Shown in pieces: positions 6,599 through 64,000 of a stretch of 64,000 bases of DNA (positions are counted from its first letter, which is position 1; each line of letters begins with the position of its first letter). The translations under genes and the position numbers were made by a program. The notes under the pieces were generated by a model. That model made no database searches and was not told the DNA's origin. It worked only from the letters and a program-made list of their open reading frames with translations. Origin of the DNA: Eutreptiella sp. 'Long Island Sound 2002' (taxonomy: Eukaryota > Protista > Euglenida); assembly GCA_964036045.1 (NCBI GenBank), contig OZ038379.1, positions 11,594,001 to 11,658,000 on the forward strand, given 5' to 3'.

Positions 6599-7915
6599 TG
6601 AACTAACAAGCGTAGCGTCATGACACAAGAACTTTTGCGGAGTAGCTGCGGAGTAGCGGCACGAGCAGACAATTGGGTTTACGGTGGGTGCAAAAGTATT
6701 GAAATGCCCTCCCTTTAGCATTTACAGCATGAGGGCAAACACCTACGTACTATGCAATTGAACTTTATGACACTTGCTACTAACATCGGTGCTTGCACTC
6801 CATCATTTTGCGTTGATTCCAAAGCACAATATGCGGGTGAGACACATGCAGCCCATCCATGTCCTCAAAGCTTCACGATGCGTGACACTCAGATGGTTTA
6901 TGTTCATCCTTGCTTCAAGAGACAAATACAAAACCTTAAGGCTCCCAATTAGGAGGTGTGTTCAAATTCACCCGGATAGTACATGGAAGGGTGAATTGTA
7001 CAACACAATGCAAAGCAAGCGAGCAGCGCTCAAAAGCTCAAAGACATGGAACTCGATATAGACAGCAAAATGCGGTGCCCCATGTGCTGCTGGTCTCAAC
7101 ACCAATAATCTGATGGGGGGCACGGTACAAAAGGGATTGAAAACAGGAAAATGGACGACCCTTGGACGTCTCAGTTTGAATGGCATCGCATCTATACCAT
7201 AAACAATTTGTCATTTGGGGCACGCCAACTCTTCGGCAATCGCGAAGTCTCCCGAGGCAGAAGGAATACCTTCTCGAGCCTTCCGTAGGATGGGATCAAA
7301 ATTTTACCCGCGCCCGCAAGGGTCGGCCAAAACCAAAACCAAACAAAACCAAAATTTGGTGCCACGCACAGGTTAGCAGCTGCTACAAGCGGAAAAGTAA
7401 GGATGCGGGCTTCAATGGGGGAGAGCTGATGAAAATGTTCTCAAATAAAATGCATCCGGGCTGCACCCGTGACAAGTGGTAAAAGAGCCTTCTCCGTTCT
7501 CAAATTGTGCAATGCCAGTAAGGGAAACCACTTCAAGTGATAGCGACATCCACACGATGCAAGCCAATCCACCCTCCACCATTGAGTGCAAAAAGTCCAA
7601 GATATCGCACTTTTGATGCCAATTCAAACGAAAGCGGATGGTTCGCCGCTGCTGTGCATAGCGCATGACGTCGTGCCTGCAAAATCGTTCAAAAACCCAG
7701 TTCAGCCGCAAACGGTGGTCACTAGCGAAAAAACATGAACACGACTCTCCAATACGGCCATGTGGTTGGTCGGCATGGCAAATCCCTGCTCTGGCACTCC
7801 CGGGAACCTAGTGACTTGGGAGGGAATGGGCCCAATTGTGGTGGTAGCTCACGTGTTCCCTTTGCAAGATTTTGTCCTTCATGCAAAACGGAAAATCTTT
7901 GAATCTTTGAATTGA
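6599..7915 (+). repeat. Left arm of long inverted repeat (~1.32 kb); contains the empty target site of the YR retrotransposon at ~6939-6940
   Basis: Reverse complement matches 9832-10733 joined to 15781-16120 almost perfectly, apart from a 74-bp indel (7761-7834) and a few SNPs. Confidence 0.95.
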
Positions 7916-9831: not shown

Positions 9832-10731
9832 TCAATTCAAAGATTCAAAGATTTTCCGTTTTGCATGAAGGACAAAATCTTGCAAAGGGAACACGTGAGC
9901 TACCACCACAATTGGCCGTATTGGAGAGTCGTGTTCATGTTTTTTCGCTAGTGACCACCGTTTGCGGCTGAACTGGGTTTTTGAACGATTTTGCAGGCAC
10001 GACGTCATGCGCTATGCACAGCAGCGGCGAACCATCCGCTTTCGTTTGAATTGGCATCAAAAGTGCGATATCTTGGACTTTTGCACTCAATGGTGGAGGG
10101 TGGATTGGCTTGCATCGTGTGGATGTCGCTATCACTTGAAGTGGTTTCCCTTACTGGCATTGCACAATTTGAGAACGGAGAAGGCTCTTTTACCACTTGT
10201 CACGGGTGCAGCCCGGATGCATTTTATTTGAGAACATTTTCATCAGCTCTCCCCCATTGAAGCCCGCATCCTTACTTTTCCGCTTGTAGCAGCTGCTAAC
10301 CTGTGCGTGGCACCAAATTTTGGTTTTGTTTGGTTTTGGTTTTGGCCGACCCTTGCGGGCGCGGGTAAAATTTTGATCCCATCCTACGGAAGGCTCGAGA
10401 AGGTATTCCTTCTGCCTCGGGAGACTTCGCGATTGCCGAAGAGTTGGCGTGCCCCAAATGACAAATTGTTTATGGTATAGATGCGATGCCATTCAAACTG
10501 AGACGTCCAAGGGTCGTCCATTTTCCTGTTTTCAATCCCTTTTGTACCGTGCCCCCCATCAGATTATTGGTGTTGAGACCAGCAGCACATGGGGCACCGC
10601 ATTTTGCTGTCTATATCGAGTTCCATGTCTTTGAGCTTTTGAGCGCTGCTCGCTTGCTTTGCATTGTGTTGTACAATTCACCCTTCCATGTACTATCCGG
10701 GTGAATTTGAACACACCTCCTAATTGGGAGC
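9832..10731 (-). repeat. Right arm of long inverted repeat, inner part (interrupted by the retrotransposon)
   Basis: Reverse complement of ~6941-7915; identical peptides on opposite strands in the ORF track (7180..7482+ and 10190..10492-). Confidence 0.95.
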
Positions 10732-10806
10732 CTCGTGTTTTGTGCTTGCTCAAAACACTGGTTTAACTTAATTACCTCTTCATTAGGCATTTGTCAGTTT
10801 GTTCCC
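10732..10806 (+). repeat. Split direct repeat A1 (75 bp)
   Basis: Matches 15259-15333 with one mismatch. Confidence 0.95.
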
Positions 10807-15778: not shown

Positions 15779-16120
15779 CTTAAGGTTTTGTATTTGTCTC
15801 TTGAAGCAAGGATGAACATAAACCATCCGAGTGTCACGCATCATGAAGCTTTGAGGACATGGATGGGCTGCATGTGTCTCACCCGCATATTGTGCTTTGG
15901 AATCAACGCAAAATGATGGAGTGCAAGCACCGATGTTAGTAGCAAGTGTCATAAAGTTCAATTGCATAGTACGTAGGTGTTTGCCCTCATGCTGTAAATG
16001 CTAAAGGGAGGGCATTTCAATACTTTTGCACCCACCGTAAACCCAATTGTCTGCTCGTGCCGCTACTCCGCAGCTACTCCGCAAAAGTTCTTGTGTCATG
16101 ACGCTACGCTTGTTAGTTCA
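15779..16120 (-). repeat. Right arm of long inverted repeat, outer part
   Basis: Reverse complement of 6599-6940 (cttaaggttttg...cttgttagttca). Confidence 0.95.
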
Positions 16121-47666: not shown

Positions 47667-48254
47667 TTGTCCATCTCTGCCCTTCTCCTTCAGACAGAGA
47701 AATATTTTTCAGTCCTAGTATGGGTTTTTAATCACTAGGCCAACACCGTAAGCATTTTTGCGCTGAGATGTGCCATTGAGGGTTAATCATTACACCGAAA
47801 ATTAAAAAAAATGCGAGCATTGAACGACTGTTTGGGGCACATTTGATCAATATTCCCCTCGCTGCAGTTGTCCAATTAGGGGGACGTCTTCTGGCTTATC
47901 CGGGTCATGCAACTTATAGCTATCTGTCCTTTTGTGGATCTCTTTTACATTTCCCTGGGGGTGCCAATGACCTGTCGCAGCAATTCCGAACAAGGTCCGG
48001 ATCCCGCACTATTAGTTTAAAGCGCCGCTGGAGCTGTGTTTTTCAGATACAACTCGGTACAGAGAAAATGTAAAATTCGACCGAGATTTGTCAGTTTTTA
48101 CGGTGCTAGCACCGTAAAATTTTCATGGGTCATACATTTCCGTTCCACGGGGCTAAAGCCCTGTCGTGTACTTGTTTTTAAAAAGAGTGCATTTTTTACG
48201 GCGCCCTGGGTCTGGGGGTTTACAGCTGTACGCATGCGTGTAGTGCACCCCAAG
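47667..48254 (+). repeat. Interspersed repeat family copy 2
   Basis: Homologous to 35884-36650. Confidence 0.85.
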
Positions 48255-49862
48255 TTGCTTGTTGTTATTTGTTGCTTGTGTTGTTAGTTGTGGTTGCCCT
48301 TCATTCATATCTTTGCTTTTTGACTCAAAATAAACGCCCGGTCTATAGCCGTCTACTGAGCTGTGACTCGATTTTACCCTTACCGTACTTTCATTGCTAT
48401 GAGTAGGGGGCTGGTTTGTTGTGTGTCGCCCCCTGTGGGCTGGCCCTGCTACTGATGTGCCCGCTGCCAAACGTGATGAAGTCCGAATCAGCCCCCCCCT
48501 CCCAAAACAAATCCGCCGAGGCCCGATTTGGTTCCAGTGCTGCCCCATATTGTGACCGCCTGCCTCTTGCTGGAAGGTCTGCACCTGCAACAATCCTGCC
48601 AAACGCCGACCCCCTTCGTGGCCATGCTCCCACCCTCCGGCAATGGATTCACAGTACTTACCCCCTCCCCCCTCAAGAGCGCGTGCCACCGCTGTTTTTC
48701 TGACCGTAGTTTTTGCGGCCAAGAGTATCCAGTGACGTGGTTGGGTGCCGATTGTGGAGAAAAAGAGGGTGGCAGTATTTCCTGTTGATGACAGCGTTCT
48801 GTTTGACACTAAAACCCAATGCTCACGGGGGGGGGGTCTGACATACTGTAGGATAGTCTGCTTTGTGATATCTATATGAGCCCTCTATAACAGTCTTGTC
48901 AGGGTACTGCATTGTACCACAGAGAAAGGTGCCTATGGCAATGTCACTAAAGAGCTTTTTGTCCTGACCCTGCTGCTCTGCAGCCTTGTGCCTGTGTGGT
49001 AAAGGTGTGGCAAAGCATACAACATCTGCATCCCACAGCGGGGGCCCTTGGTTTCCATGCGCGACTCCCCCTGTCCCTGCCCTGGGGGCCCAGTTAGTTG
49101 CAAAGGGTGGCCGCGTTTGGCCCATAGTACTGGTGCCGCCGAAGGTGTTGGGTGACGCCGTACGTCAGGTGTCATGCTCTCCTCCACCCCATGGCGATCG
49201 TTGTAAGGTGCATATATGTTGGGGTACCCCCTCCCCCGGCCGCTGGCTAGACCCTCCCCCTCAAAGGAGCCTTCGGCCCACTTCTACTTGGGGGAGGTGA
49301 GTCGCGTATCAACCCGAGGGGTTGGCCCCCGCGTGACCCAATGCCATTCCTGGCAACCAACAGAAAAGGGATGCCAGGGATCGGAACCAGGGATGCTCTT
49401 GTAACGATGTGATGTCGTGCATCATGGACAAGTCACTGGAACTAAATTTTGTCGGCAAGACGTCTGTATATTGTGTGGCTGCTGTGCTCATGTGAAACCT
49501 GGTCTGGATGAGGTCTGGGTAGGTTTTTGGTGTATCCATCGGATCTCAAAACACGGGTCACAGGCAAGCACCATTTTGTGTCGAAGCTCCGCCCTGTGCT
49601 ACGGTCGTTTCCCCGACTCCGGCCGACCAATTGTTCAAGATCTCTATGTTTGCCGAACACCAACAGGGTTCCTTCCGGTCAGCCCCCCCCCAAATCGACG
49701 GGGTTCGCTTGGACCCAACTTATCCAAACAGACCAAACGGCCACATGCCCCCTTCCGGGGTTGTTCGCATTGTGTGGAGGGCACCTGCGCAAGGGTGTGG
49801 GAGGGACATGCCTTGCCACTGGTCTCGATGTCTCGATTCTCCTCCTCCCTCCCGTCTGGCAG

Positions 49863-50554
49863 GCGCCCTGGCATACTCACACGGCTACCCCATCGCCAAC
49901 GAGGTCTTCACGCTCACCATCACGGGACTCGGCCTGTCCAACTTCGACTCCTACGCAGTCGTCCCGGAGGCCGAGGGGTGCGGCGCCCCGACGGCGGTCC
50001 CCGTCGCCGGGGTATCCGGCACAACCTCCGCGACCCTCTCCGTGTCGCGTGCCGCCGGGAGCCACGTGGTGTGCTACCTCCTCCTGGGCGCGGCCTGGAA
50101 GCAGGTTGGCGCGCCGTTCGTCGTCAACGGGGCCTCCGACGCCTACACGACGCCGCACCCGGCGGCGCGAATGACCAATTTCACCCTGGTGGTGTCCGGC
50201 AGCGGCTTCGACTCCGGTGACAAGGTCGCGACGGTCCCGGCCGCGATGTCCTGCTCCGCAGTGAGCCCTCTCACCGGGGGTTACCTGTCGGTTGGGCCGG
50301 ACATGATCAGCCCGGACAACACCACCGTCAATGCCACGCTGGTGCAGTACGCCGCGGGCGCGTACAAGGTCTGCTACAACGTCCAGGATCTGGGGTGGCA
50401 GCAGGTCGGGACCTACGAGTTGCAGGTCGCCGGGGTGTCGTCGCACACCACGATCGGGAGCCCTGCGGCCGCCGGGGTGCGCTTCACGTTGAACCTGCAC
50501 GGCAGCTTCTTGACGGACGAGGATGTCTACGGCATCGCGACACCCGGGCAAGAG
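49863..50554 (+). CDS. Exon 7: Ig-like repeats
   Basis: Acceptor tctggcag| completes the split Gly codon; donor gag|gtctgt at 50555, phase 0. Confidence 0.88.
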
Positions 50555-50555
50555 G

Positions 50556-52044
50556 TCTGTTGAGGGCTGCAGGGAAGGGTAGCGCAGCGCTTAACACGGG
50601 GGAGCTGTGACAGTTCATTCCGCCGCAACTACTTCTGCCCGCACCCAGCGGTTTGCCAACCGAATGGTAGTCGCCAAACCTGGGCCCACAACCGCTTTTC
50701 CAACCATTGTTAACCGCCTCCGGCACCCACTTTTGAACTCCCCCTCCAGTCCCCCACTTCCAATCCCAACAATTATGACTGTCCTCCATTTGGGATGCCA
50801 GGGTATCTTCCGGCTGTTGTTGCTTTGCAAAATGGCGCTGCATCTGAACTGGTTGCCCCCCCCCCCCCCAAAAAGAGACAACACACAAATACAAAAAATA
50901 GTAGCAGACACAACCTCCCAACCCAACCCAACCCACCGACAAGCAGCACGATTAACCCGACCACAAATAAATTATCCGCCACAACAACTATCCGCCGACA
51001 TTTTCCAGACTCCTGTTCCGACCTTGGTGTGTGGGGCTTGATTTGTCTGGGGTATTGTGCTGTAGTTTTTGATCTTGCGTGTCGTTGCTTCTCCATGAGG
51101 GTCCTTTGGTGCTGTCATGCTTTGTGGATGGTCAGATTGGTTGAAGGGTCATTTGGGCCGTATTTGGCCGTACTGCCCTCTACGGTGCCCCGCTGGCGCA
51201 AATTCCTCTATGGTCCACCCAAGGTGAGCACAACCCCCTCTATGGTGCCCCTACAGTGAGCACATTCCCTCTATGGCCTCGTGTAGTGATCACTCCCCTC
51301 ATGGCCACTCAAGAGGGGGCAGACACTCTGAAATGGCGCCCCTTCAGTGAGCACAACCCCCTGCTATGGCCCCCCTGCAGTGAGGAGAAGCGCCTGTATG
51401 GCCCTCCAGGCGGCCCAACAGGACAACAAACAGGGCCCCTCGGTGCTAGCCATGAGGCAAGGGCGGGTGTAAGGCTCGGGGTGTACGTGGGTGGATTGGA
51501 GGGAGAGAAGGAGCGGGAGACCAGGAGGCAGCCCCGAGGGACGCCGCCCCCCTCCCTCCAAATGACGGTAGGCAGGTCTTCTTGTCCAAAGTAAGGAAAA
51601 ACTCTCCATCAAAATTGCATCTGCAATGTGCCCCAGAAACGCATGTCAACCATATACATGCCTCCAGCAACAAGCAGCCCCTTCGTCCATGAAAAATCCG
51701 ACGGCCAGTCCCTATCCTCTGTCCTGCACCTCATTGCGCCGTGCTCCTGTTCCCAAACAAAACTCCTGCCCCCCCACCCGCCATCCATCTGTCAATACCC
51801 GCTTTTGCAACCGCTCTTGAAACCGCCTTCATGCCCCTGCTGTGCCCTTGCAGTGCGACAACGTGACGATGGTGGCAGTTTCTGCCGGTTGGGTGTCGGG
51901 TGGTGGCGCGCTGGTGGCAGTGCCGGAGCAGCAGCTGGACGCCACTGGGACGTACACCGTGTGCTACAACTTCCGCGGCCTGGGTCTGCTGTCCATCACT
52001 GACCTGGTGGTGGTGAGCGGGGCGGTGGCCTTCCGGACCGTTGG
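50556..52044 (+). repeat. 1,489-bp host segment (intron 7 from +2 plus the first 191 nt of exon 8), copy 1
   Basis: Matches 60472-61963 except for 2 noticed SNPs (50648/60564, 51561/61480) and 3 extra C in a homopolymer. Confidence 0.97.
51854..52044 (+). pseudogene. Truncated copy of exon 8, fused to the retroelement
   Basis: Same sequence as 61773-61963; breaks at ttgg|atgtat; the host frame runs on to a stop at 52384. Confidence 0.88.
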
Positions 52045-53394
52045 ATGTATGCAGCGCCACTACTGCAACCCACGCAAATCACCGCCAGAACCGCCCAGGG
52101 GAACCCCATCTACGTCTATCACCCCACAGCAATCGCCCGCCTACCCATACCCAGCGACACCGACATCATCTTCTTCACTGACGCATCCGGCACCCAGCAA
52201 CGCACCCCCACGGTCGGTTGCGCCTCCGTGCGCATCACCCGGCACGCGGACGGCCTCCACGTGGAACACCACACCGGGGCCACCATCTTTGGGGCGTCCT
52301 CCCACGGCGAACTGCGCACCATGGCAGACGCCGTCACCGCCACACCGCCACCCACGACGATCCGGCCCCGCAACATCTGGGTAGTCGTGGACGCCACGGT
52401 TGACATCCACCTCACCAGGAGCCTTGCGGACCTGCCCCTCCACAAAGCACTCGAATCCGGCCTCACCACACAAGCGTTGGGACTATGGATGGCCTTCAAG
52501 GGCATGCACCCCCAGGACACCCTACACATCATCAAGCAGGAGTCACACCGCTACGCATACGGCAATGGACGCGCAGACACGCAGGCCAAACACCAGAACA
52601 CCAACCACACCCTAGGGCTCGAACGCGTGCGACTGGACACCCCACACCACAGCCACCTGCAGCACCTGCCCCCGATACCCCCGGCCACACAGCCCCCCCA
52701 ATGGATGCCCGAGGACACGCCGTACACGGATCGAGACAAGCAGTACCACTACCCCACACCCATCCAGCAACTGGCCACCACACTGGGCCACCCAGCGAAC
52801 ACCGAACTCCTCCGACGCCTCGAAGACTCCGTCCACACCCCCCTCTACTACTCCGCCCTGCGCCCGGATAGCCTCCCAGCACACCTACAAAAGCCCCGAC
52901 TCCAACTCGCCCTCGAACAACTTCCCCTCCTCACCCGATACCACCGATGGTATACGCGCCGCTCGATCCACGTCCCCGCAGGACACACCAAATGCATCTG
53001 CAGCCACGCGGAAGAAGAAACATGGGACCACTTCAAGGCGTGCCCCCTGTACAGAGGACTGGACACCCTCACAGACTGGAACCCAACCCACACCATCGCA
53101 CAGCACGCCGGATGGCTGACGCAGTCCCCGGCGACCCAGCAACTCACCACCGTCCTCAAGCAGACGGAGGTGCTCGAGGCAGTCCGCAGGGGACTCGTCC
53201 CCACTGCCGTCTACACCTTGCTACGCACCCACGCGGAGGACCCCCAGGCCACGGCGGCGCACATGCAGCGGACGGCCGTTGCCAAGACGGCGGAGCAGCT
53301 CACATACCGCACCCACAAATACCTGCAGCATGCGGCAACCCTGCCCCCAACAGACCAAGCCCACCTCCTCAAACTCCTGTTCTACCAACCATGA
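52045..53394 (+). CDS. C-terminal part of LINE ORF2: RNase H plus CCHC zinc finger
   Basis: FFTDAS, HGELRT, VVDAT, HIIKQESH..YGNGRADTQAK (RNase H D-E-D-D/H pattern); CICSHAEEETWDHFKAC. Confidence 0.88.
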   Translation: MYAAPLLQPTQITARTAQGNPIYVYHPTAIARLPIPSDTDIIFFTDASGTQQRTPTVGCASVRITRHADGLHVEHHTGATIFGASSHGELRTMADAVTATPPPTTIRPRNIWVVVDATVDIHLTRSLADLPLHKALESGLTTQALGLWMAFKGMHPQDTLHIIKQESHRYAYGNGRADTQAKHQNTNHTLGLERVRLDTPHHSHLQHLPPIPPATQPPQWMPEDTPYTDRDKQYHYPTPIQQLATTLGHPANTELLRRLEDSVHTPLYYSALRPDSLPAHLQKPRLQLALEQLPLLTRYHRWYTRRSIHVPAGHTKCICSHAEEETWDHFKACPLYRGLDTLTDWNPTHTIAQHAGWLTQSPATQQLTTVLKQTEVLEAVRRGLVPTAVYTLLRTHAEDPQATAAHMQRTAVAKTAEQLTYRTHKYLQHAATLPPTDQAHLLKLLFYQP

Positions 53395-53409
53395 GAACCT
53401 ACCCCGTGA

Positions 53410-55560
53410 CATACCAACACGGAACCCCCACCACGTCTACACACCATCCACCGAGCACAGCACTGGCACAGCACACACGGACGCCACAGGCACCGCACAC
53501 ACTCCCACCAGCATGCGCGCGCCACCAGCCCCCATCCCCCCACGCCGCCGTCCGTCCACAGGTACCACCAACCACCAGCCACCGCATGTCCCCTCTGCGT
53601 TAGCCGGCGGCTACCACAGACAGCCCTGCCCTGCAACCCAGACCACTGGGTCTGCCTGGGAGCCGCGCACCGCCTCACCCGCTGCCCCCACTGCGGGGAC
53701 CTCAACCCCCGCCACCACGAGCGGCCCGCGGCCCCAGCCGCACCCCACCCCGCCAGCCACCCCAGCTTCTTCGGGTTCCTCACCGACACCCTCCGGGACC
53801 ACCTGGGAGGGTACTACGTGGCGGACGCGGCGGACCACGCATGGACCATAGCCGTGGCCACGGGCAGCACACCCCTGCCCCCCCACAGCCCACCCCTACG
53901 CCACAGCGGAGGCGGCTTGAACGTGGCGGCCCGCCACATCCTCCTCGCCCTATACCTCCACCACCGAGACCTACACCTCCCAGGCCCACAACTCCCGGCC
54001 CCCCAAGCAGCAGCCCTGACGCCGGAAGCGTGGGCCGACACGGCACCAGAGGAGATAGCAGCCTACCTCCGAATCACTTGCCGCCGGTTCAAAAACGCCC
54101 TCGGCCGACGGAAGGGAACACCTTACCCCCTCAGCGCACTCCTCTACCCGGCACACCACCCCCACCCCGCACAACAGACGCCCCCGGAGGGCTGGGCGTC
54201 TTTTCGGGACGCCCACCTGGCCGCCCCCGACGAGGCCACCGCCACGCGGATGGGCCTCACGGACCAGGAAACCTACGTCAGAGGCCTCAAGACGAGCCTC
54301 CAAGAGGCACACCGCTGGCACGCCCGCTCCCCGTCGCCCCCACAGGGACAGGGGGGTTCACCCGCCCCCGACACCCACCAGGCCAAGAAGACCAAGACAG
54401 GTCAGGGGGCCCGCCAACGCGCCCACCAGCAGGGCGCGACGCCCCGACCAAGGCCCGGGTCCAGCCACACCGCACCACCCCACGCCCAGACCCCCGGGGC
54501 ACACCAACAACACCGCCACCGCCAGCGCCCACCACCACCACCGTACCGCAGCACCCAAACCCTGCAGCCCAGTCAGCCACCACCGCCCACACACGTCCAC
54601 ACCATGCCAGGACCACCATACGCGCAGAGCCAGGGGACATGGCACCACCAACACCACCACCACGCCCCCGTCCCTCCCAACCCCTACCCCCTAATGCCCC
54701 CAAGCTACAGCGACCCCCACCAGCTACATCCCCACCACGCCCCAGCACAACCAGGCCCCGCGAACCACCCACCCCACATAGCGCACATCACCGCACCACA
54801 CCATCACGTATTCCACCACCACCAGCCCCTGCCACCACACCCACCAACGCCGGGGTACCACACACAACCGGCACACCCTCCACACCACCACCACGCGGTC
54901 CAGCACCACCCGCCGCCCCCGCTACACGGGCCCACGACATACGAGCCACGGTACACCCCCATGGACCCGCGAGGAGCCGCGCACGCACACCAGCAACACC
55001 AGGGCCTAGTAGGAGCGCCCCACCACCACCAACAGCCCCCCCACCCACACCCCATACCAGCGAGCACCATCCACCAGCAGCCACCCATCACATACGGACC
55101 ACAGCCCCACCCGGGGGCTCATGCGGCCGCCTCCCACCCGCACCCCGGCACCACAACCAGTCAAGAACCGCAAGGGCCACACGGCGCACACACGCAACAC
55201 CCACACGACCCACAGGGACGCCCGGACCCCCAGCCGGCACAACACCCACCCCCGCCCCCCCCACCCCACCACCACCAGCAGCCCCCCCACCCACACCCCA
55301 TACCAGCGAGCACCATCCACCAGCAGCCACCCATTACATACGGACCACAGCCCCACCCGGACGCTCATGCGGCCGCCTCCCACCCACACCCCGGCACCAC
55401 AACCAGTCAAGAACCGCAAGGGCCGCACGGCGCACACACGCAACACCCACACGACCCACAGGGACGCCCAGACCCCCAACCAGCACAACACCCACCCCCG
55501 CCCCCCCCACCACCAACAGCGCCACCCCCACACCACCCCCCCCCCGCCCCCCCCCCCGAG
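53410..55560 (+). CDS. Extra ORF, N-terminal part: RING-like finger, helical domain, His/Pro/Gln-rich disordered region with an 82-aa tandem duplication
   Basis: Frame open 53410-56184; CPLC-x11-C-x3-H-x2-C-x2-A-x6-CPHC at 53587-53694; likely start is the ATG at 53391 overlapping the ORF2 stop (ATGA), which needs one frameshift. Confidence 0.6.
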
Positions 55561-56861
55561 ACCAGGCCACGGACACAACACGCGGCAGCCAGCACCAGCC
55601 AATCGACGTCGATACCCCCGCCGACACACGCCACCGCGAATCCCCCCTCCCGCGACCGCCACAAGAGACCCCATCACCGGACCCCACGCGCGACAACGAT
55701 GACCACCCCCCCCAACCCACACCACCCCCCCCATCACACCCCGCACCACCAGTCGCCGCACCGGCCGAACCCTACGCCCTACACAACCCCGCAGCGGTAC
55801 GGCAGCACCTCCGGGGACTCGGGGAACAGGACGTCGTGCTGTACCTCCGCACCTCCGGCACCAGCACCCCCATCCGGGCGGCCACCCTGGTCCAGGCGGC
55901 CACCCTGGGGGAAGGCGTCAGAGACTTCCTCTTCGACGCCTTCCTCCACGTCGCCCGACACGAGCGCCCCCCGCGCGCCACCCCAGACGGCGAGAGCCCG
56001 CCCCCCACGGGGAGCCGGATCTGGGTGCCCCCCATCGACTGGGGGCGACACCTGGTCGGACACCCCGTGCCGGGGCGGGTGGGCACCAAGGGCCGCACCC
56101 GCTACCACGAGCCCGACATGGCCCACCCCCCACCCGACGCCACCCCCGACAGCACCAAAGAGTGGGAGCGGGAAACATGGGTAGCCCGGATGGCCTCCCT
56201 GAGCAACTTCCGGCACCACGTCCCGGGGGACATCCCCACCCCCGACGAGCAGCAGCCAGCCCCCTCCACGTACATGACCCTCATGTACAATCTGCACTAC
56301 ACCCTCTCCACCACCACCTACGACGCACCCACAGACCACTGGGTGGTACACGGCACCGACTCCCTCCTCCCCGCCGACTACACCCCCCCCCCACACAACC
56401 CAGGCCCCGACACGTACGCCAGGGGGGACGACCCGGACGACCCCCACATCTGGGGCACGTGGGAACCCAAATCCCTGGACACGCTGCTCTCCATCCGCAG
56501 CGGCTACCAGGGCCTTGGTAGGGCGATGTATTGCCTCGCCAAGTGGACCCAACGGACCTGGGGGATCCCCACGGACCGATGGGTGTGGGTGGTCACGCTG
56601 CGCCCCCAGCAGAGGGAAGCCCCCCCAAACCGCAGGGGACCCACCCCCCCACGCCCCACCACCCTACAACTATGCCCGTACATGGTGGCAGCCCGCCTCA
56701 TGACGCTGCTGTGGACGGGCCCCCACACCCCCACCCAAAACTACCCCCACCTCACAGAGGAGGACATGCCCGGCATCCAGCGATGCTTCTTCCAGACCCT
56801 CGACTACCTCCAGCAAACACACCCGCACGTCCTGGAGCAGATATGGCCACCCCCCGGGTAA
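55560..56861 (+). CDS. Extra ORF, C-terminal part: Ulp1/SENP-like (peptidase C48, clan CE) cysteine protease
   Basis: Motif order IRAATLVQ..GEGVRDFLFDAFL, RIWVPPIDW, YNLHYTL (His 56295), VHGTDSLL (Asp 56358), PQQ, LQLCPYMV (Cys 56673); joined to the upstream frame across poly-C runs near 55500-55560. Confidence 0.55.
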   Translation, partial: DQATDTTRGSQHQPIDVDTPADTRHRESPLPRPPQETPSPDPTRDNDDHPPQPTPPPPSHPAPPVAAPAEPYALHNPAAVRQHLRGLGEQDVVLYLRTSGTSTPIRAATLVQAATLGEGVRDFLFDAFLHVARHERPPRATPDGESPPPTGSRIWVPPIDWGRHLVGHPVPGRVGTKGRTRYHEPDMAHPPPDATPDSTKEWERETWVARMASLSNFRHHVPGDIPTPDEQQPAPSTYMTLMYNLHYTLSTTTYDAPTDHWVVHGTDSLLPADYTPPPHNPGPDTYARGDDPDDPHIWGTWEPKSLDTLLSIRSGYQGLGRAMYCLAKWTQRTWGIPTDRWVWVVTLRPQQREAPPNRRGPTPPRPTTLQLCPYMVAARLMTLLWTGPHTPTQNYPHLTEEDMPGIQRCFFQTLDYLQQTHPHVLEQIWPPPG

Positions 56862-58304
56862 CCCACGTGCCCGCGCAGCCGAGACAACGCCGCCACGCCA
56901 GCACCAGCACGCACGGATCACCAGGGAAAACGCGCGCACACGCCCGATGCCCGAACCTGCACCCTCGTTCTCGCTACTTACAGGACCCAGCATCATACGC
57001 CCGCCCCCGAGGCCCAGGACCCTCCGCCGTCTCCCACAGCCCTCTCCTCCGCCTCCGACTCCACAACCTCCACCACCACGACCACCTCATCCACCACCAC
57101 CACCACGTCCTCATCCAGCACTCCACCCCCCAGGCCGCGGGGGACACCTCCCAAACGGGCCTCCAAACCCGCCCCCACCGCGAGCAGCCCCGCCGCCGCC
57201 AAGGCCCACGCCCCGACGAAGCCCACACCCACGACCCAGCCGACGCCCAAGACCGCCGCCAAACGGCCACCCAAACCCAAGGGTCAACCCGCAGCCAAGC
57301 CCAAACCCAAGCCCAAACCTGGCGCCACGACAGCAGCGCGAGCCCGGCCCCCCGAGGACGTCCTCTACGACATCCGGCCCCAGCCGTCCCAGGCCCGAAG
57401 GCAGCAGCGCCCAGCGCGGCGCCCCCCCACCGTCACCGACGCCACCGCCACCACCTTCATGGCGGAGCGCGCCGCGGCCGAAGCGCGACGCACCTCGTCC
57501 CGCCACCTCTCAAAGCCCGCACCCCAGGCCCACGGACCGCTCCCGACCAAGCCAGAACAACGCCAGGGTCCACTAGCAGCGTCCCCGCCCCCCTACCGGC
57601 CCTCGATGACAGCCCACATGCAACGCATGCCCCACTACCGCCGCCGCCGCGAATCCCCGCCCAACCCCGAGGCGGAGACCGTACGCGCACACCCGCGGGT
57701 CCACATCCGCGTGCACCCCCACTCCCCACGCACCCCCACGGAACAGGACTACGAGGAATCCCCCAGGCCCGCCACCGCCGCCGGTCCCCACGACCACGTC
57801 ACACCCACCCACGCCCACTCCTCCGCCCAAGACCGCAGGCCCGCCCAGGAACAGTGGTGGCAGCGCTGGACCCACACGCAGCTCTGGGAGCTGCGGAAGT
57901 GGGGCCGGGGAGAGCCCTCCCTCGAGGGCCTGGTCCATCGGCCCCGCAAGGGGTCGGTGGAGAACTGCCGCCTCCGGCCGGCGGGGGGGTGGATGCCGCA
58001 GGCCGCATGGGAAGCCATGCTGGCCGATGCGCTCCACCCCCTGGGAGTCCACCCCCGCAACCTCCCCGCGCCCCAGGACCACCCGTATGTCCTCAGGCGC
58101 CTGCGGGAGACCCTCCAGGAAACGCAGCGAGACGGCATCCGCCTGTGGGACATCACCCAAAGCCCAGCTCCGCACGCACACACCCCCTCACCACCCCACA
58201 AGCGTCGGCGCACCGACACCGGCGACACCCACAGCACCCCAGGAGCCCTGCGCGCCACACAACACGACGCGCCTGACCCCCCGGCCAGCGGCGCCGCCAT
58301 CTAA
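56862..58304 (+). CDS. Extra ORF: Ser/Thr/Pro/Lys-rich region plus Trp-rich C-terminal domain of unknown function
   Basis: 480 sense codons directly after the protease TAA in the same frame; first ATG at 57459; WWQRWTHTQLWELRKWG...WEAMLADAL. Confidence 0.55.
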   Translation, partial: PTCPRSRDNAATPAPARTDHQGKRAHTPDARTCTLVLATYRTQHHTPAPEAQDPPPSPTALSSASDSTTSTTTTTSSTTTTTSSSSTPPPRPRGTPPKRASKPAPTASSPAAAKAHAPTKPTPTTQPTPKTAAKRPPKPKGQPAAKPKPKPKPGATTAARARPPEDVLYDIRPQPSQARRQQRPARRPPTVTDATATTFMAERAAAEARRTSSRHLSKPAPQAHGPLPTKPEQRQGPLAASPPPYRPSMTAHMQRMPHYRRRRESPPNPEAETVRAHPRVHIRVHPHSPRTPTEQDYEESPRPATAAGPHDHVTPTHAHSSAQDRRPAQEQWWQRWTHTQLWELRKWGRGEPSLEGLVHRPRKGSVENCRLRPAGGWMPQAAWEAMLADALHPLGVHPRNLPAPQDHPYVLRRLRETLQETQRDGIRLWDITQSPAPHAHTPSPPHKRRRTDTGDTHSTPGALRATQHDAPDPPASGAAI

Positions 58305-58929
58305 CCCCGTTACCCAGCAAACCACCACCACGGGGCGCCACGCCAGGCCCCGCCCAGAAGTCACCAAACGAACCGGACGCCGAAGGAAGCCAACACACAC
58401 GACAACGAGCACCACTACGCCCAAAGACGCCGAACCCAGGCCCGCTACCGTGGGCTCCTCTCCACCCTCAGCACGACACACACGTCGCTGGCGTCACTCC
58501 TCCGCCGTGCCCCCTCCCACGCCACCGCCCCGCCCCCCCCCCCTCCCGCCGCACGTCCCCACGCCGCCCAGCACCCAGCCCCACACACTGCGCCACAGCA
58601 TCGCCCTAGTCCGGCTCCTCCACCATCGCGCCACTTGGCACCTCACAGTAGACCGCCGTCCTGTGGTCCCGCTCCCCCCGGCACCGCTCCCGGGGCCGCA
58701 CCCGGCCCACGTCGTGTTCGCCCCCACGTCGCGGGCCGCGGACATCCTCCCGCTCCTCGCCGCCACCCCTCCCGGGCATCGCATACTGCTTGCCGCCAAC
58801 CCCTCGGTCCTCAGTGAGGTCCTCATCGGGCACGCCGACGCCCTGCACGTGCGCCCGCTGCTGCCCAACCTGCACGCTGCGTACGCCCCCGGCACGCCCG
58901 TCGACCCCTCCGTGTGGGACTCCCAGTGA
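58305..58929 (+). CDS. Extra ORF with probable frameshift in poly-C: small alpha/beta-like domain of unknown function
   Basis: RYRGLLSTLSTTHTSLASLLRR in the frame after the TAA, then HSIALVRLLH...HVVFAP...RILLAAN...VWDSQ in another frame. Confidence 0.45.
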
Positions 58930-59030
58930 GGCCACCGGCCACCGGCCGGCCCGCACGCACCACCCCGCACTCGCCTCGGGCGCACGACCCCGTGGACGCC
59001 GCTACCCACACGCCCGGCCCCGCGCAACCG

Positions 59031-59404
59031 CCTAACCGAGCCAGAACCCAAGCACAAATCAAACCCGAGCCACACCCCAAAACCGCTAACCCTTGACTCC
59101 TAACCAAGCCCGCCAAGGGAACACCGAAACCACAGCCCACACCCACAGCCCACACAGCCGCCTAACCAGCCAGCTCCAGAAGCAAAGAGACACCTCACCA
59201 AACCCACCCTGACCCAAGCCTAACCGAGCCGAAGCCCCAACACAAATCAAACCCGAGCCACACCCCGAAACCGTCAACCCTTGACTCCAAACCAGGCCCG
59301 CTGAGGGAAATACGTAGACACAGCCCACAGCCACAGCCCACACAGCCGCCTAACCAGCCAGCACCAGAAGCAAAGAGACACCTAACCAAACCCACCCTGA
59401 CCCA
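59031..59404 (+). repeat. 188-bp tandem repeat, 2 copies, in the retroelement 3' region
   Basis: Units start at 59031 and 59219 (cctaaccgagcc). Confidence 0.92.
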
Positions 59405-59545
59405 TACCCGTGTACATCAGGACACGCGAGCCGCACCCCTGGGGCGCGACCGCCGCCACAGCACCGACGACACACGCCAGAGGACACAACGCTATTGCAC
59501 CGCCGCACCAACTGCCCGTGCCTGTGCCTGCAGTGTACGCGCCCC

Positions 59546-59663
59546 TGTTTTTCTCTTTTTTGTTTTTTCTTTTTTTTTCCCAAAAAAAAAAAAAACAAGT
59601 AAAAAAAAAAAAAAGTAAAAAAAAAAAAAACAAAAAAAAAAAAACAAAAAAAAAAACGAAAAT
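59546..59663 (+). repeat. T-rich tract immediately followed by an interrupted A-rich tract
   Basis: T-rich ~59546-59578, A-rich ~59582-59663. Confidence 0.95.
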
Positions 59664-59721
59664 TAGGGGGGGAGGAAGAGGGACACAACCACCCATGGCA
59701 CACGCGCACCGCACACAGCAC

Positions 59722-59890
59722 GCACACCGGTGAACAGGAGCCCAGTGGCCCAGGACACCGCACATGCAACACAACACACCGAGCGAGCACACCGGTGAAC
59801 AGGAGCCAGCTGGCCCAGGACACCGCAGACGCACCACAGCAAACCGCGCGGGCACACCGGTGAACAGGAGCCCAGCGGCCCAGGACACTG
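59722..59890 (+). repeat. Three copies of a ~37-bp motif with palindromic core CACCGGTG at exact 65-bp spacing
   Basis: gcacaccggtgaacaggagcc....ggcccaggacac at 59722, 59787 and 59852. Confidence 0.93.
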
Positions 59891-60471
59891 CACACACGTA
59901 GGGCGGCCGAGGGACAGGAAAGAACCAATACCCCATGGGTCGGACGCACTGGGGCGACCCAGCCGACCCACCGGGCCAGTGGCAGGAGCGGTACTCCAAG
60001 GCCACTGGTCCGAGCCCGGCCAGGCTGCATCGGGGACCATGGCAAACGTCACCCGGAGCCATGGAAGCAACCGGTGACAGGCGAGCCGGTACACAGTCCA
60101 GGAGGGGGTCACCTGCCAAGCAGAGTGGCCCCGCAACTCAAGCCACAAGGGTGAGGCGGACGTACCGTAGACAAGCGGGAGCAATACCCCTTGTGGTGAG
60201 AGATACTCCACACGGCTGGGCAGCCCCCCAGAGCTGCCGCCCAAAGGAGGGGGCATGTGGCCCTACCCATGGACACATGTGGGGACACCCTCCCACCTGG
60301 GACACATGGACCGGGTGGCCGCGACAATGCCTTCCCAAGCACATGCGGGAGCGGCTCAAGAGGCACCTGACATAGGGCAGTGGGAGGGACAGGACGTCCC
60401 CTTGGTAAGACCTTCTTCCTGCAATGTCAAAGGAGGCATCCCGAGCTCCCGAAGATACCTACCTACCTACC

Positions 60472-61963
60472 TCTGTTGAGGGCTGCAGGGAAGGGTAGCG
60501 CAGCGCTTAACACGGGGGAGCTGTGACAGTTCATTCCGCCGCAACTACTTCTGCCCGCACCCAACGGTTTGCCAACCGAATGGTAGTCGCCAAACCTGGG
60601 CCCACAACCGCTTTTCCAACCATTGTTAACCGCCTCCGGCACCCACTTTTGAACTCCCCCTCCAGTCCCCCACTTCCAATCCCAACAATTATGACTGTCC
60701 TCCATTTGGGATGCCAGGGTATCTTCCGGCTGTTGTTGCTTTGCAAAATGGCGCTGCATCTGAACTGGTTGCCCCCCCCCCCCCCCCCAAAAAGAGACAA
60801 CACACAAATACAAAAAATAGTAGCAGACACAACCTCCCAACCCAACCCAACCCACCGACAAGCAGCACGATTAACCCGACCACAAATAAATTATCCGCCA
60901 CAACAACTATCCGCCGACATTTTCCAGACTCCTGTTCCGACCTTGGTGTGTGGGGCTTGATTTGTCTGGGGTATTGTGCTGTAGTTTTTGATCTTGCGTG
61001 TCGTTGCTTCTCCATGAGGGTCCTTTGGTGCTGTCATGCTTTGTGGATGGTCAGATTGGTTGAAGGGTCATTTGGGCCGTATTTGGCCGTACTGCCCTCT
61101 ACGGTGCCCCGCTGGCGCAAATTCCTCTATGGTCCACCCAAGGTGAGCACAACCCCCTCTATGGTGCCCCTACAGTGAGCACATTCCCTCTATGGCCTCG
61201 TGTAGTGATCACTCCCCTCATGGCCACTCAAGAGGGGGCAGACACTCTGAAATGGCGCCCCTTCAGTGAGCACAACCCCCTGCTATGGCCCCCCTGCAGT
61301 GAGGAGAAGCGCCTGTATGGCCCTCCAGGCGGCCCAACAGGACAACAAACAGGGCCCCTCGGTGCTAGCCATGAGGCAAGGGCGGGTGTAAGGCTCGGGG
61401 TGTACGTGGGTGGATTGGAGGGAGAGAAGGAGCGGGAGACCAGGAGGCAGCCCCGAGGGACGCCGCCCCCCTCCCTCCAGATGACGGTAGGCAGGTCTTC
61501 TTGTCCAAAGTAAGGAAAAACTCTCCATCAAAATTGCATCTGCAATGTGCCCCAGAAACGCATGTCAACCATATACATGCCTCCAGCAACAAGCAGCCCC
61601 TTCGTCCATGAAAAATCCGACGGCCAGTCCCTATCCTCTGTCCTGCACCTCATTGCGCCGTGCTCCTGTTCCCAAACAAAACTCCTGCCCCCCCACCCGC
61701 CATCCATCTGTCAATACCCGCTTTTGCAACCGCTCTTGAAACCGCCTTCATGCCCCTGCTGTGCCCTTGCAGTGCGACAACGTGACGATGGTGGCAGTTT
61801 CTGCCGGTTGGGTGTCGGGTGGTGGCGCGCTGGTGGCAGTGCCGGAGCAGCAGCTGGACGCCACTGGGACGTACACCGTGTGCTACAACTTCCGCGGCCT
61901 GGGTCTGCTGTCCATCACTGACCTGGTGGTGGTGAGCGGGGCGGTGGCCTTCCGGACCGTTGG
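60472..61963 (+). repeat. 1,492-bp host segment, copy 2
   Basis: See copy 1; begins directly after the (TACC)4 tail. Confidence 0.97.
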
Positions 61964-62201
61964 GTCGTTGGGGCAGTACCAGTCGTTCTCGCTGATCGTG
62001 GATGGCGCGGGGCTGTCAACGGCCGACAGATACGCCCTCGTGGCCAACGCCACGGCGGACTGCTTTGAGCTCACCGACCTGGGGACGCTGATCCTGGCCG
62101 GGCAGTTGGCGGGCAGCACCCAAGTCAATATCCCAACGTTGCAGATGGGCGCTGGGCTTTACAGGGTTTGTTACCAGCTGGGGACCAATGTGGCGCGGCA
62201 G
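61773..62201 (+). CDS. Exon 8 (intact copy)
   Basis: Acceptor ccttgcag| and donor ggcag|gtaccc, phase 0/0; joins PGQE|CDNVT. Confidence 0.88.
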
Positions 62202-62668
62202 GTACCCCCCCCCCCCCGAAACTGCACCCGTGTGCCCTGTATCCCCTTTGCATGCCCCGTATACCCATGTGTGTGTGTGTGTGTGCCGCAGCCGGAGGGG
62301 AGCTTAAATGACATTTCACATTGTCCTTCACAGGCCCTTGGCTTAGCGCTCAGCGCGGCTGCCGAGGGCTGGAGACGGTCGGGATCGGGTGCAGGATGTG
62401 CCTCTTCCTCCCTGTACTGCAGAAAGGCGCCTAGTCCCTGATGGTCATGTCTGTTCTTTGACTGTTTGCGGCCTGACGAGGATCTACTTACGACCAGTGC
62501 CTGTGCCTGTCCTGTTCTTGCTGGTTCTGGGCTTTGGTCGCTTTGCGTCATCCGCGTGTGTGTGTGCCCTGTATTCCCCCCCTGTACACCCTGTCCCTCC
62601 TGTATGCCCGGTGTTCCCCGTGCTCGCTCTGTATACCACCACAGCCCCACATTCATCGCATGCTTCAG

Positions 62669-63152
62669 GTTGCGGGCAATTACACCATTTTTGGTGCCAC
62701 CCAGTACACCACACTGCCCGCCACCCCATCCCGCAACAACCAATTCAACCTGACCATTTACGGCTACGGGCTCTCCGGGGACGACAAGTTCGCGCTCATC
62801 GAGGGCCACCCATCGACTTGCGATGACTCAGTGGGGGGGCAGCAGATAACTCCCCAGCTCCTGAAGAGCGACGAAGAGGTCAATGCCATGGCGTACACGT
62901 ACGCCGCGGGCACGTACACTGTGTGCTACCGCTGGGGATTCTTCAGTTGGGCTGCAATGCAGGAGCCGCTGGTGGTGCTGGGCGCTACTGGGTACTCCAC
63001 AACACCCTCCCAGCCGACGGACATGGTGGCCTTCACAGTCACCATCTTGGGCAGCGGATTCAGCACCGACGACAATTACGCGTTGCTTGAATCCGCCAGC
63101 GACTGCAGCGGGGCAGGAGGTGCCTCACAGGACGTCACCAGTGGAATGATAG
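62669..63152 (+). CDS. Exon 9: Ig-like repeats; gene continues beyond the window
   Basis: Acceptor cttcag|; probable donor atag|gtctga, phase 1. Confidence 0.82.
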
Positions 63153-64000
63153 GTCTGATCTAACCCCGCCCGCATGTCTGTACCCATGCCCAGTGCTCGG
63201 GCCAACCCTGCCCAGGCCTTGTGCCAGCCTTGACCATTGGTTAGCAAGGTTTAATCACTTGTAGGCTAAGACATAGGCCATACCAAAATGGACCAAATCA
63301 CCTCGAAGAGGGTTGTTAGATCAAGCGCAGGCGCAGGCGTCGTATAACCCTACCCTTTTTTGGGTGTTGTTCGCGTAGCATACCCAAAGTTGTGGTATCG
63401 GATGTCCAACCCCTTGTAAAATCATCATTTTGGGCCAGAAAATGATCCCCCAATGAACTTTTCGATTTTGACACCCCTACCCCCTCGTACCTGGGTACCC
63501 CGTTTGGGGTGTGTGGGGGTGTGTGGGGGGTGGGGGCCAAAACTTCTTTGCATATTGTGGGCGCTGTGTGTTGACTCAGACCTAGGTCCCGAAGAACTTT
63601 TTTCTTGTATATGGAGCCCCTTACTCACGGTGGGGGTCTCAGGTCTGAACTCCGGGTACCCTCGGTCGCCCCCCCCCCCCCCCCCTGAATGGGCCCTTGC
63701 CAATGAGGACTTCGCCATTTTCATGCTGGTCAGGCTGCCTAGTGTCACCTGAAAAATTTCCAAAATTCGACTTTTGCCGCAACCCTTCTGTCGCCCCTAC
63801 GATGGGTTTGGGTGATCATTTGGTGACAATCCGGGTACTTGAGCACCCATAGGGACCCACATAGTAGCCGCTAGGTCCAAGTAGCCCCCGCCATGGCCCC
63901 CCCGAAAGCCCCAACATTGCTGTTGTTTACGGGCAGGACGGGCTGGGGAGCGGGCTTTTCCCGCAAGTGCTGCAGCCGGGGGAGCACGACCGTTATCCAT

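Follow-up and report, generated by a model that had tools for sequence, protein, structure and literature searches.

The 64,000-nt stretch analysed here, which we call the window, comes from Eutreptiella sp. 'Long Island Sound 2002' (assembly GCA_964036045.1, contig OZ038379.1, positions 11,594,001-11,658,000, forward strand). Positions are 1-based within the window; the assembly is designated G000, and C1, C2, C8 and similar names refer to contigs in it. The window holds a host gene that is interrupted by an 8,427-bp insert, which on its structural hallmarks is a long interspersed nuclear element (LINE), i.e., a retrotransposon of the kind lacking long terminal repeats (non-LTR). On both sides of this element lie near-identical direct copies of host sequence, and the origin of this duplication is the subject of the present analysis.

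By local alignment, copy 1 occupies positions 50556-52044 (1,489 bp, forward strand), and consists of intron 7 from its position +2 followed by the first 191 nt of exon 8. Copy 2 occupies positions 60472-61963 (1,492 bp, forward strand). The copies differ by two mismatches (50648 G/A and 51561 A/G) and one 3-bp indel. Between them, also on the forward strand, are a 3-nt filler, ATG, at the LINE 5′ junction (52045-52047), the 5′-truncated body of the LINE (52048-60455), and a (TACC)4 tail (60456-60471) that copy 2 adjoins directly. The body starts in the RNase H-like part of an open reading frame (ORF) and continues into a long 3′ region. The insert is strongly T-poor and is rich in C and A. 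The host letters to the left of copy 1 are ...GCAAGAGG|TCTGTT, and those to the left of copy 2 are ...TACCTACC|TCTGTT. The T at 60472 is common to the tail and the target. Because every family member has a T after its tail (10 of 10 junctions, see below), the start of the duplicate is ambiguous, and could be position +2 or +3 of the intron. A preliminary description of this DNA had reported near-identical host copies of 1,489 and 1,492 bp around an 8.4-kb element, the second directly after the (TACC)4 tail, with the duplicate running from position +2 of intron 7 to 191 nt into exon 8. The alignment and the RNA-placed intron agree with this layout, apart from the choice between +2 and +3.

The structure of the host gene was established with contigs assembled from sequencing reads, which were compared over window positions 48000-53500. 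Runs X1 and X4 are estuary metatranscriptomes, X2 is an "organism A" run that we guess to be RNA, and X9 is DNA-like. Exon 7 (49862-50554, forward strand) encodes repeated modules of about 75 amino acids, and contigs in X1, X2 and X4 cover it from 49862 to 50552 or 50554. A loose end of the RNA contigs before 49862 marks its acceptor. In all three RNA runs, contigs skip from 50552 to 51852 with two ambiguous letters, a joint that the tool reports as 'GT..AG (cut +2)'. With the cut moved by two letters, the original intron 7 is therefore 50555-51853 (forward strand), a GT..AG intron of 1,299 nt. Exon 7 is open and ends in phase 0, and the frame is continuous over the joint (GQE|CDNVT). Thus, the exon 7 donor at 50554|50555 is now placed by RNA from three runs, as had been proposed from the sequence. 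The nearest Atlas cluster to exon 7 comes from Euglenozoa; TIG-like domains are no more than a weak lead there. A Pfam scan of exons 7 and 8 gave no usable match.

Exon 8 is present twice, once in part and once intact. Its first 191 nt at 51854-52044 (forward strand) are orphaned, while the intact exon extends in RNA over at least 61773-62218 (forward strand), with its frame open as far as 62441. At exon-8 nucleotide 191, the mRNA contigs pass into GTCGTTGGGG..., i.e., the sequence from 61964 onward that follows copy 2. They contain the 191 nt and at least 255 further letters of this kind, and a single X2 contig of 6,959 nt holds everything, with nucleotide 191 again followed by GTCGTTGGGGCAG... 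from 61964 onward. The acceptors at 51853|51854 and 61772|61773 lie where the preliminary description had placed them. It had also stated that use of the first acceptor would give a chimeric protein, and our reading of the frame on into the LINE agrees, with a stop at 52384. Among the read contigs for the compared region, none joined exon 8 to the LINE, although contigs cannot prove such a transcript absent.

The duplicate carries the whole intron together with its acceptor, and the gene should therefore still be spliceable from the donor at 50555 to the acceptor at 61772. The composite intron removed in this way would be 11,218 nt (50555-61772, forward strand) and would include the orphan part of exon 8; its removal is needed for an insertion-bearing unit to yield the observed mRNA. 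Since all assembled units of this locus carry the insertion, the mRNA should come from removal of the composite intron. The claim that the duplicate rescues the gene was thus upheld in one part, in that exon 7 is followed by an intact exon 8 in mature mRNA, while use of the distal acceptor is plausible and not proven. Overall, it is probable that the mRNA arises by removal of the composite intron and that the duplicate rescues the gene in this manner.

The LINE family is young, with copies that are 98-99% identical to the insert. Genome-wide, the 5′ part has more than 2,000 candidate places and a 3′ variant has 1,864, while no further family copies were found within the window. Fifteen independent copies align to the insert from exactly 52048 onward, and upstream of this point their sequence differs from that of the window. 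Because all 15 continue upstream with other sequence, we take the window copy to be 5′-truncated and the ATG at 52045-52047 to be filler. The 5′ ends of other copies vary as well (57911, 58187 and 58986), and full-length copies extend further upstream than the window copy. The family 3′ end reads ...CCCGAAGA(TACC)n. In 10 independent copies the tail is (TACC)3-6 and is joined directly to the target.

The ORF that remains in the window copy, at 52045-53394 (forward strand), appears to have an RNase H-like domain and a Cys/His knuckle, based on motifs that we recognized by eye in its translation (FTDAS, GEL, VVDA, GNGRAD and CxC..H..C). Its nearest Atlas clusters, which are derived with a language model, carry RNase_H and zf-RVT with scores of 0.93-0.95. 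A search of PDB sequences with this ORF gave chance matches only, and a single-sequence AlphaFold prediction of its residues 1-202 had a pLDDT of 31. Pfam gave no usable match in the insert's long ORFs or in LINE ORFs upstream; a lone Peptidase_U49 row was below the cutoff and was ignored. In the 1.5-kb upstream region of full-length copies, a frame-2 ORF of L057 (C2:110.52 Mb) had no Pfam match to a reverse transcriptase (RT), and its Atlas neighbours include Prp8 RT-like and RVT_1 clusters, which are weak leads only. Judged by its structural hallmarks, the insert is a LINE.

Within the long 3′ region, at 55018-55509, 58452-59022, 59030-59404 and 59582-59656, there are a 246-bp unit present twice, a 188-bp unit present twice and an A-rich tract of 75 nt. 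The segment 58452-59022 is absent from the commoner variant of the family. The long ORFs of this region, which are without a Pfam match, may merely reflect the lack of T.

Direct repeats around a retroelement superficially resemble LTRs, and one could propose either that the 1.49-kb repeats are LTR-like termini of the element or that the LINE inserted at the joint of a tandem duplication that already existed. The RNA shows that the repeat is made of host intron and exon sequence, which is treated accordingly in splicing. Moreover, the repeat occurs only in the units of an amplified locus (described below), always beside the same flanks, and other copies of the family have different flanking sequence. 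We therefore rejected an LTR retrotransposon, as the repeats are host sequence and do not travel with the element to other sites. As for a pre-existing joint, the LINE would have had to hit it exactly, without a single additional base to the left or right, and this would add another coincidence. Taken together, these two proposals are exceedingly improbable.

To place the window insertion in context, we surveyed 10 independent 3′ junctions of the family, and flanking duplications were examined in the window copy and six others. Three insertions have a duplication, one lacks any of at least 12 bp, and three are uninformative. The window insertion (C2:11.64 Mb) combines an 8.4-kb LINE part, a (TACC)4 tail and the 1,489-bp duplication, whose left end is G|T. 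At C1:178.3 Mb (L036), a LINE part of 1.3 kb with a (TACC)3 tail is associated with a 222-bp duplication that has four mismatches and a left end of C|T; the target there, ACCTAC|TGGCCC, has 6 nt of homology to the tail (ACCTAC). At C8:5.55 Mb (L035/L072), a LINE part of 2.26 kb with a (TACC)6 tail is associated with a 3,289-bp duplication with a left end of A|T. This duplication opens with the T that immediately follows the tail (GCAATGA|TATGC), and its far end is no more than 2 nt from the LINE 5′ junction. Its copies are 98.5-99% identical to each other, versus at most 96% for other genomic copies of that target repeat. The insertion at C1:21.2 Mb (L038), with a LINE part of about 1.8 kb and a (TACC)4 tail, is the one lacking a duplication of at least 12 bp.

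The uninformative cases differ in kind. The flank of L034 is a repeat, such that a duplication under about 400 bp would escape listing, and the flank of L032 recurs in inverted orientation 6.6 kb away. In the case of L040, the 450-nt downstream flank recurs 36.4 kb upstream on the same strand with 99% identity (C19:30491196-30528048), while other genomic copies are at most 91% identical. This recurrence on C19 may reflect either a LINE-bridged duplication of great length or a segmental duplication that has nothing to do with the LINE.

The junctions themselves follow a simple pattern. A T comes after the last TACC in 10 of the 10 independent 3′ junctions, and in none of the 10 does the nick precede a G. 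In all three of the duplicated insertions, this T is also present in the upstream copy of the target. Because of this, the T can be seen as a base common to the target and the tail, which is what pairing of the nicked target end with the U of UACC should give, and the priming nick can therefore be placed at the left edge of the duplication. It is an evenly balanced question whether the family routinely makes target duplications of 0.2-3.3 kb. An origin of the duplicate from RNA (see below) has as its premise that an event at the DNA level could not account for a kilobase duplication. This premise is not supported, as the duplications of 222 bp and 3,289 bp at two independent insertions of this family show the same layout.

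The explanation that we favour, and consider highly likely, is an ordinary target-primed insertion of a 5′-truncated LINE, with a target-site duplication that is unusually long but typical of the family. In the proposed sequence of events, the bottom strand would be nicked just left of the T at 50556 (50555|50556), which is base +2 of intron 7. The freed 3′ end, which would end in A, could then pair with a U of the (UACC)n tail and prime cDNA synthesis. Copying would halt within the RNase H region, at the position corresponding to 52048. The top strand would be broken 1,489 bp downstream (52044|52045), 191 nt into exon 8, and its 3′ end would be joined to the cDNA with the three filler bases (ATG). 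This distant break could be a loosely positioned second nick, a pre-existing break or the end of a sister chromatid. With 3′ overhangs produced in this way, fill-in of both long single strands would give the observed layout, in which the host segments are designated A, B and C: A-B-LINE-tail-B-C. The whole structure would later have been amplified some 17-21 times by segmental amplification.

A quite different origin, put forward in the preliminary description, involves RNA splicing. Here, a nick in exon 8 would have primed reverse transcription of the gene's own intermediate of intron lariat and 3′ exon, the RT would have copied this RNA to the 5′ end of the intron and would then have jumped to the 3′ end of the LINE RNA, making copy 2 a cDNA of host RNA. 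RNA does confirm the donor of the intron at whose position +2 (or +3) the duplicate starts, the gene and the LINE share a strand, and the duplicate holds only sequence that is present in the pre-mRNA. The duplicated segment is without a complete intron whose loss could be scored as a sign of an RNA copy, and its left end is compatible with the 5′ end of an RNA. However, the same layout at the two other loci has left ends of C|T and A|T. These are not GT donors, so the survey did not bear out the expectation that long duplications in this family start at 5′ splice sites. The junction between the tail and copy 2 obeys the usual priming rule of the family, namely (TACC)n and then T, as at all 10 junctions. 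The splicing-based origin would instead require a nick at a G|G step within exon 8, which is never seen in the family. It would also require the RT to start on a foreign RNA and only then to move to that of the element. Known chimeras of the U6/L1 type have the reverse order: they begin on the tail of the LINE, and the cellular RNA ends up 5′ of the LINE sequence. Finally, no scar of a branch point is found between the copies; their lone near-fixed difference, at 50648, is 1,205 nt upstream of the acceptor. For these reasons, we regard copying of a splicing intermediate as very unlikely.

Several observations weigh against our preferred explanation, target-primed insertion. The left edge of the duplication is exactly at a 5′ splice site that RNA confirms; there are 394 T nucleotides in the unit of exon 7 and intron 7, so that under the T rule this is roughly a 1-in-394 event for this insertion. 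Neither an RT nor an endonuclease domain is shown for the element, as the window copy is truncated downstream of any RT and Pfam is silent. The set of duplicated family insertions that could be examined numbers only three, and the insertion at C1:21.2 Mb has no duplication of at least 12 bp. In addition, the X9 depth at 50648 is 190 for A, the copy-2 allele, versus 474 for G and 464 for the flank, which misfits two copies per unit, although the tool warns that read depth is not copy number. With regard to the first of these points, one match of a donor to the T rule somewhere in the genome should be unsurprising because there are about 2,000 candidate copies of the family. That the left edge coincides with the splice donor is thus best read as chance.

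After the insertion, the locus as a whole underwent a large segmental amplification, to about 17-21 copies. In the assembly, at least 38 near-identical matches to the 1.49-kb segment occur, and almost every one belongs to a pair with a spacing of 9.9 kb. Matches number 17 for the left flank and 21 for the right, i.e., about 17-21 units at approximately 100% identity. The units, which occur in both orientations, are found on C2 at 6.68-7.33 Mb and 10.9-12.27 Mb, where they are 150-230 kb apart, and on contigs C523, C763, C912, C1045, C1065, C1132, C1953 and C2256. No insertion-free unit was found in the assembly; all units carry the insertion. At 50648, copy 1 has G in 15 of 15 units, and the matching position of copy 2 (60564) has A in 19 of 21. 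Since this G/A difference separates the copies across units, the duplication arose once, before the amplification. The host segment with its insertion at 49300-63200 of the window is part of this amplification. In two units (C2:11049842-11064845 and C2:6841445-6856460), the copies are 13.5 kb apart, not 9.9 kb, which implies about 3.6 kb of extra sequence in the insert.

These data also bear on the possibility of an assembly artefact, in which alleles or paralogous units with and without the LINE were stitched together and the duplication does not exist on one molecule. X9 depth across the repeat is 539-664, which is 1.2-1.4 times that of the flank rather than twice, and the share of the copy-2 allele is too low, at odds with an assembly in which every unit has both copies. 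On the other hand, the pair with 9.9-kb spacing is present in at least 15 units, on chromosome-scale and unplaced contigs, in both orientations and with variants specific to individual units. A stitching of alleles cannot place copy 1 flush with the truncated LINE 5′ end and copy 2 flush with the tail. Moreover, X9 contigs contain both the junction between the tail and copy 2 and the junction between the copy and the right flank. We therefore consider such an artefact hardly credible. The X9 depths would fit a sample with copy 2 in fewer than half of the units; in that case, some strains may have units free of the insertion, from which the mRNA could come.

The window insertion shares many properties with target-primed reverse transcription (TPRT) of non-LTR elements. 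These include a 3′ tail of simple repeats, 5′ ends truncated at variable points, a 5′ junction with filler or microhomology, a directly duplicated target and, at the priming site, a base common to the tail and the target. By contrast, the duplications in three of the insertions examined here are 222, 1,489 and 3,289 bp, versus 12-18 bp for L1 ORF2p (PMC11702581). L1 insertions that bridge tandem duplications occur in tumours and in cell models (10.1101/179705; PMC11702581), and small tandem duplications are found at insertion sites in L1-expressing cells (PMC11702581). The bridged duplications in human L1 were explained by joining of the cDNA to a 3′ end that lies downstream and stems either from a break already present or from a sister chromatid (10.1101/179705). 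What is shared with the present case is a LINE at the joint of a direct target duplication and, on our proposed mechanism, a cDNA that would join a 3′ end downstream of the priming nick. However, the L1-mediated tandem duplications are rare somatic accidents, of kilobases to megabases in size, whereas here the layout recurs in the germline within one protist family of LINEs, in one case in an expressed gene.

A second relevant group of events consists of template-switch chimeras made by RTs. U6/L1 and other RNA/L1 chimeric insertions (PMC6789731; 10.1101/2025.02.02.635956) provide the precedent that the splicing-based origin invokes, namely a LINE RT that copies as far as the 5′ end of a cellular RNA. 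The host segment in the window differs from such chimeras in its position, which is 3′ of the tail, and in its sequence, which is identical to that of the adjacent DNA.

If our explanation is correct, a young LINE family with some 2,000 candidate copies repeatedly leaves duplications of hundreds of bases to kilobases, which suggests only a loose coupling between the priming nick and the break of the second strand. Duplications of this length can neutralise an insertion into a gene, in that a fresh acceptor and a whole exon are regenerated, and correctly spliced mRNA is present for the gene described here. Additionally, to programs that find LTR elements by their structure, a LINE between kilobase direct repeats resembles one of these elements. 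In the published assembly of Euglena gracilis, such tools gave a very high share of LTR elements (PMC11252322). It is conceivable that this share might be inflated by LINEs with long direct repeats.

We now note some additional features of the locus and of the family. At C2:7320882-7333076 and C2:7604905-7611955 there are inverted pairs of LINE 3′ ends that point towards each other, each end with its downstream flank and with 6-9 kb between the flanks. These inverted pairs could be LINE-centred palindromes, reminiscent of the L1 fold-back inversions in tumours (10.1101/179705), or assembly artefacts. In the right flank of the duplication, a repeat of about 280 bp (62286-62566) has at least 696 candidate places with 94-97% identity, and is probably a young element resembling a short interspersed nuclear element. 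Elsewhere in the window, 6599-7770 forms inverted repeats with 9902-10733 and 15779-16120, at 99.4-99.5% identity.

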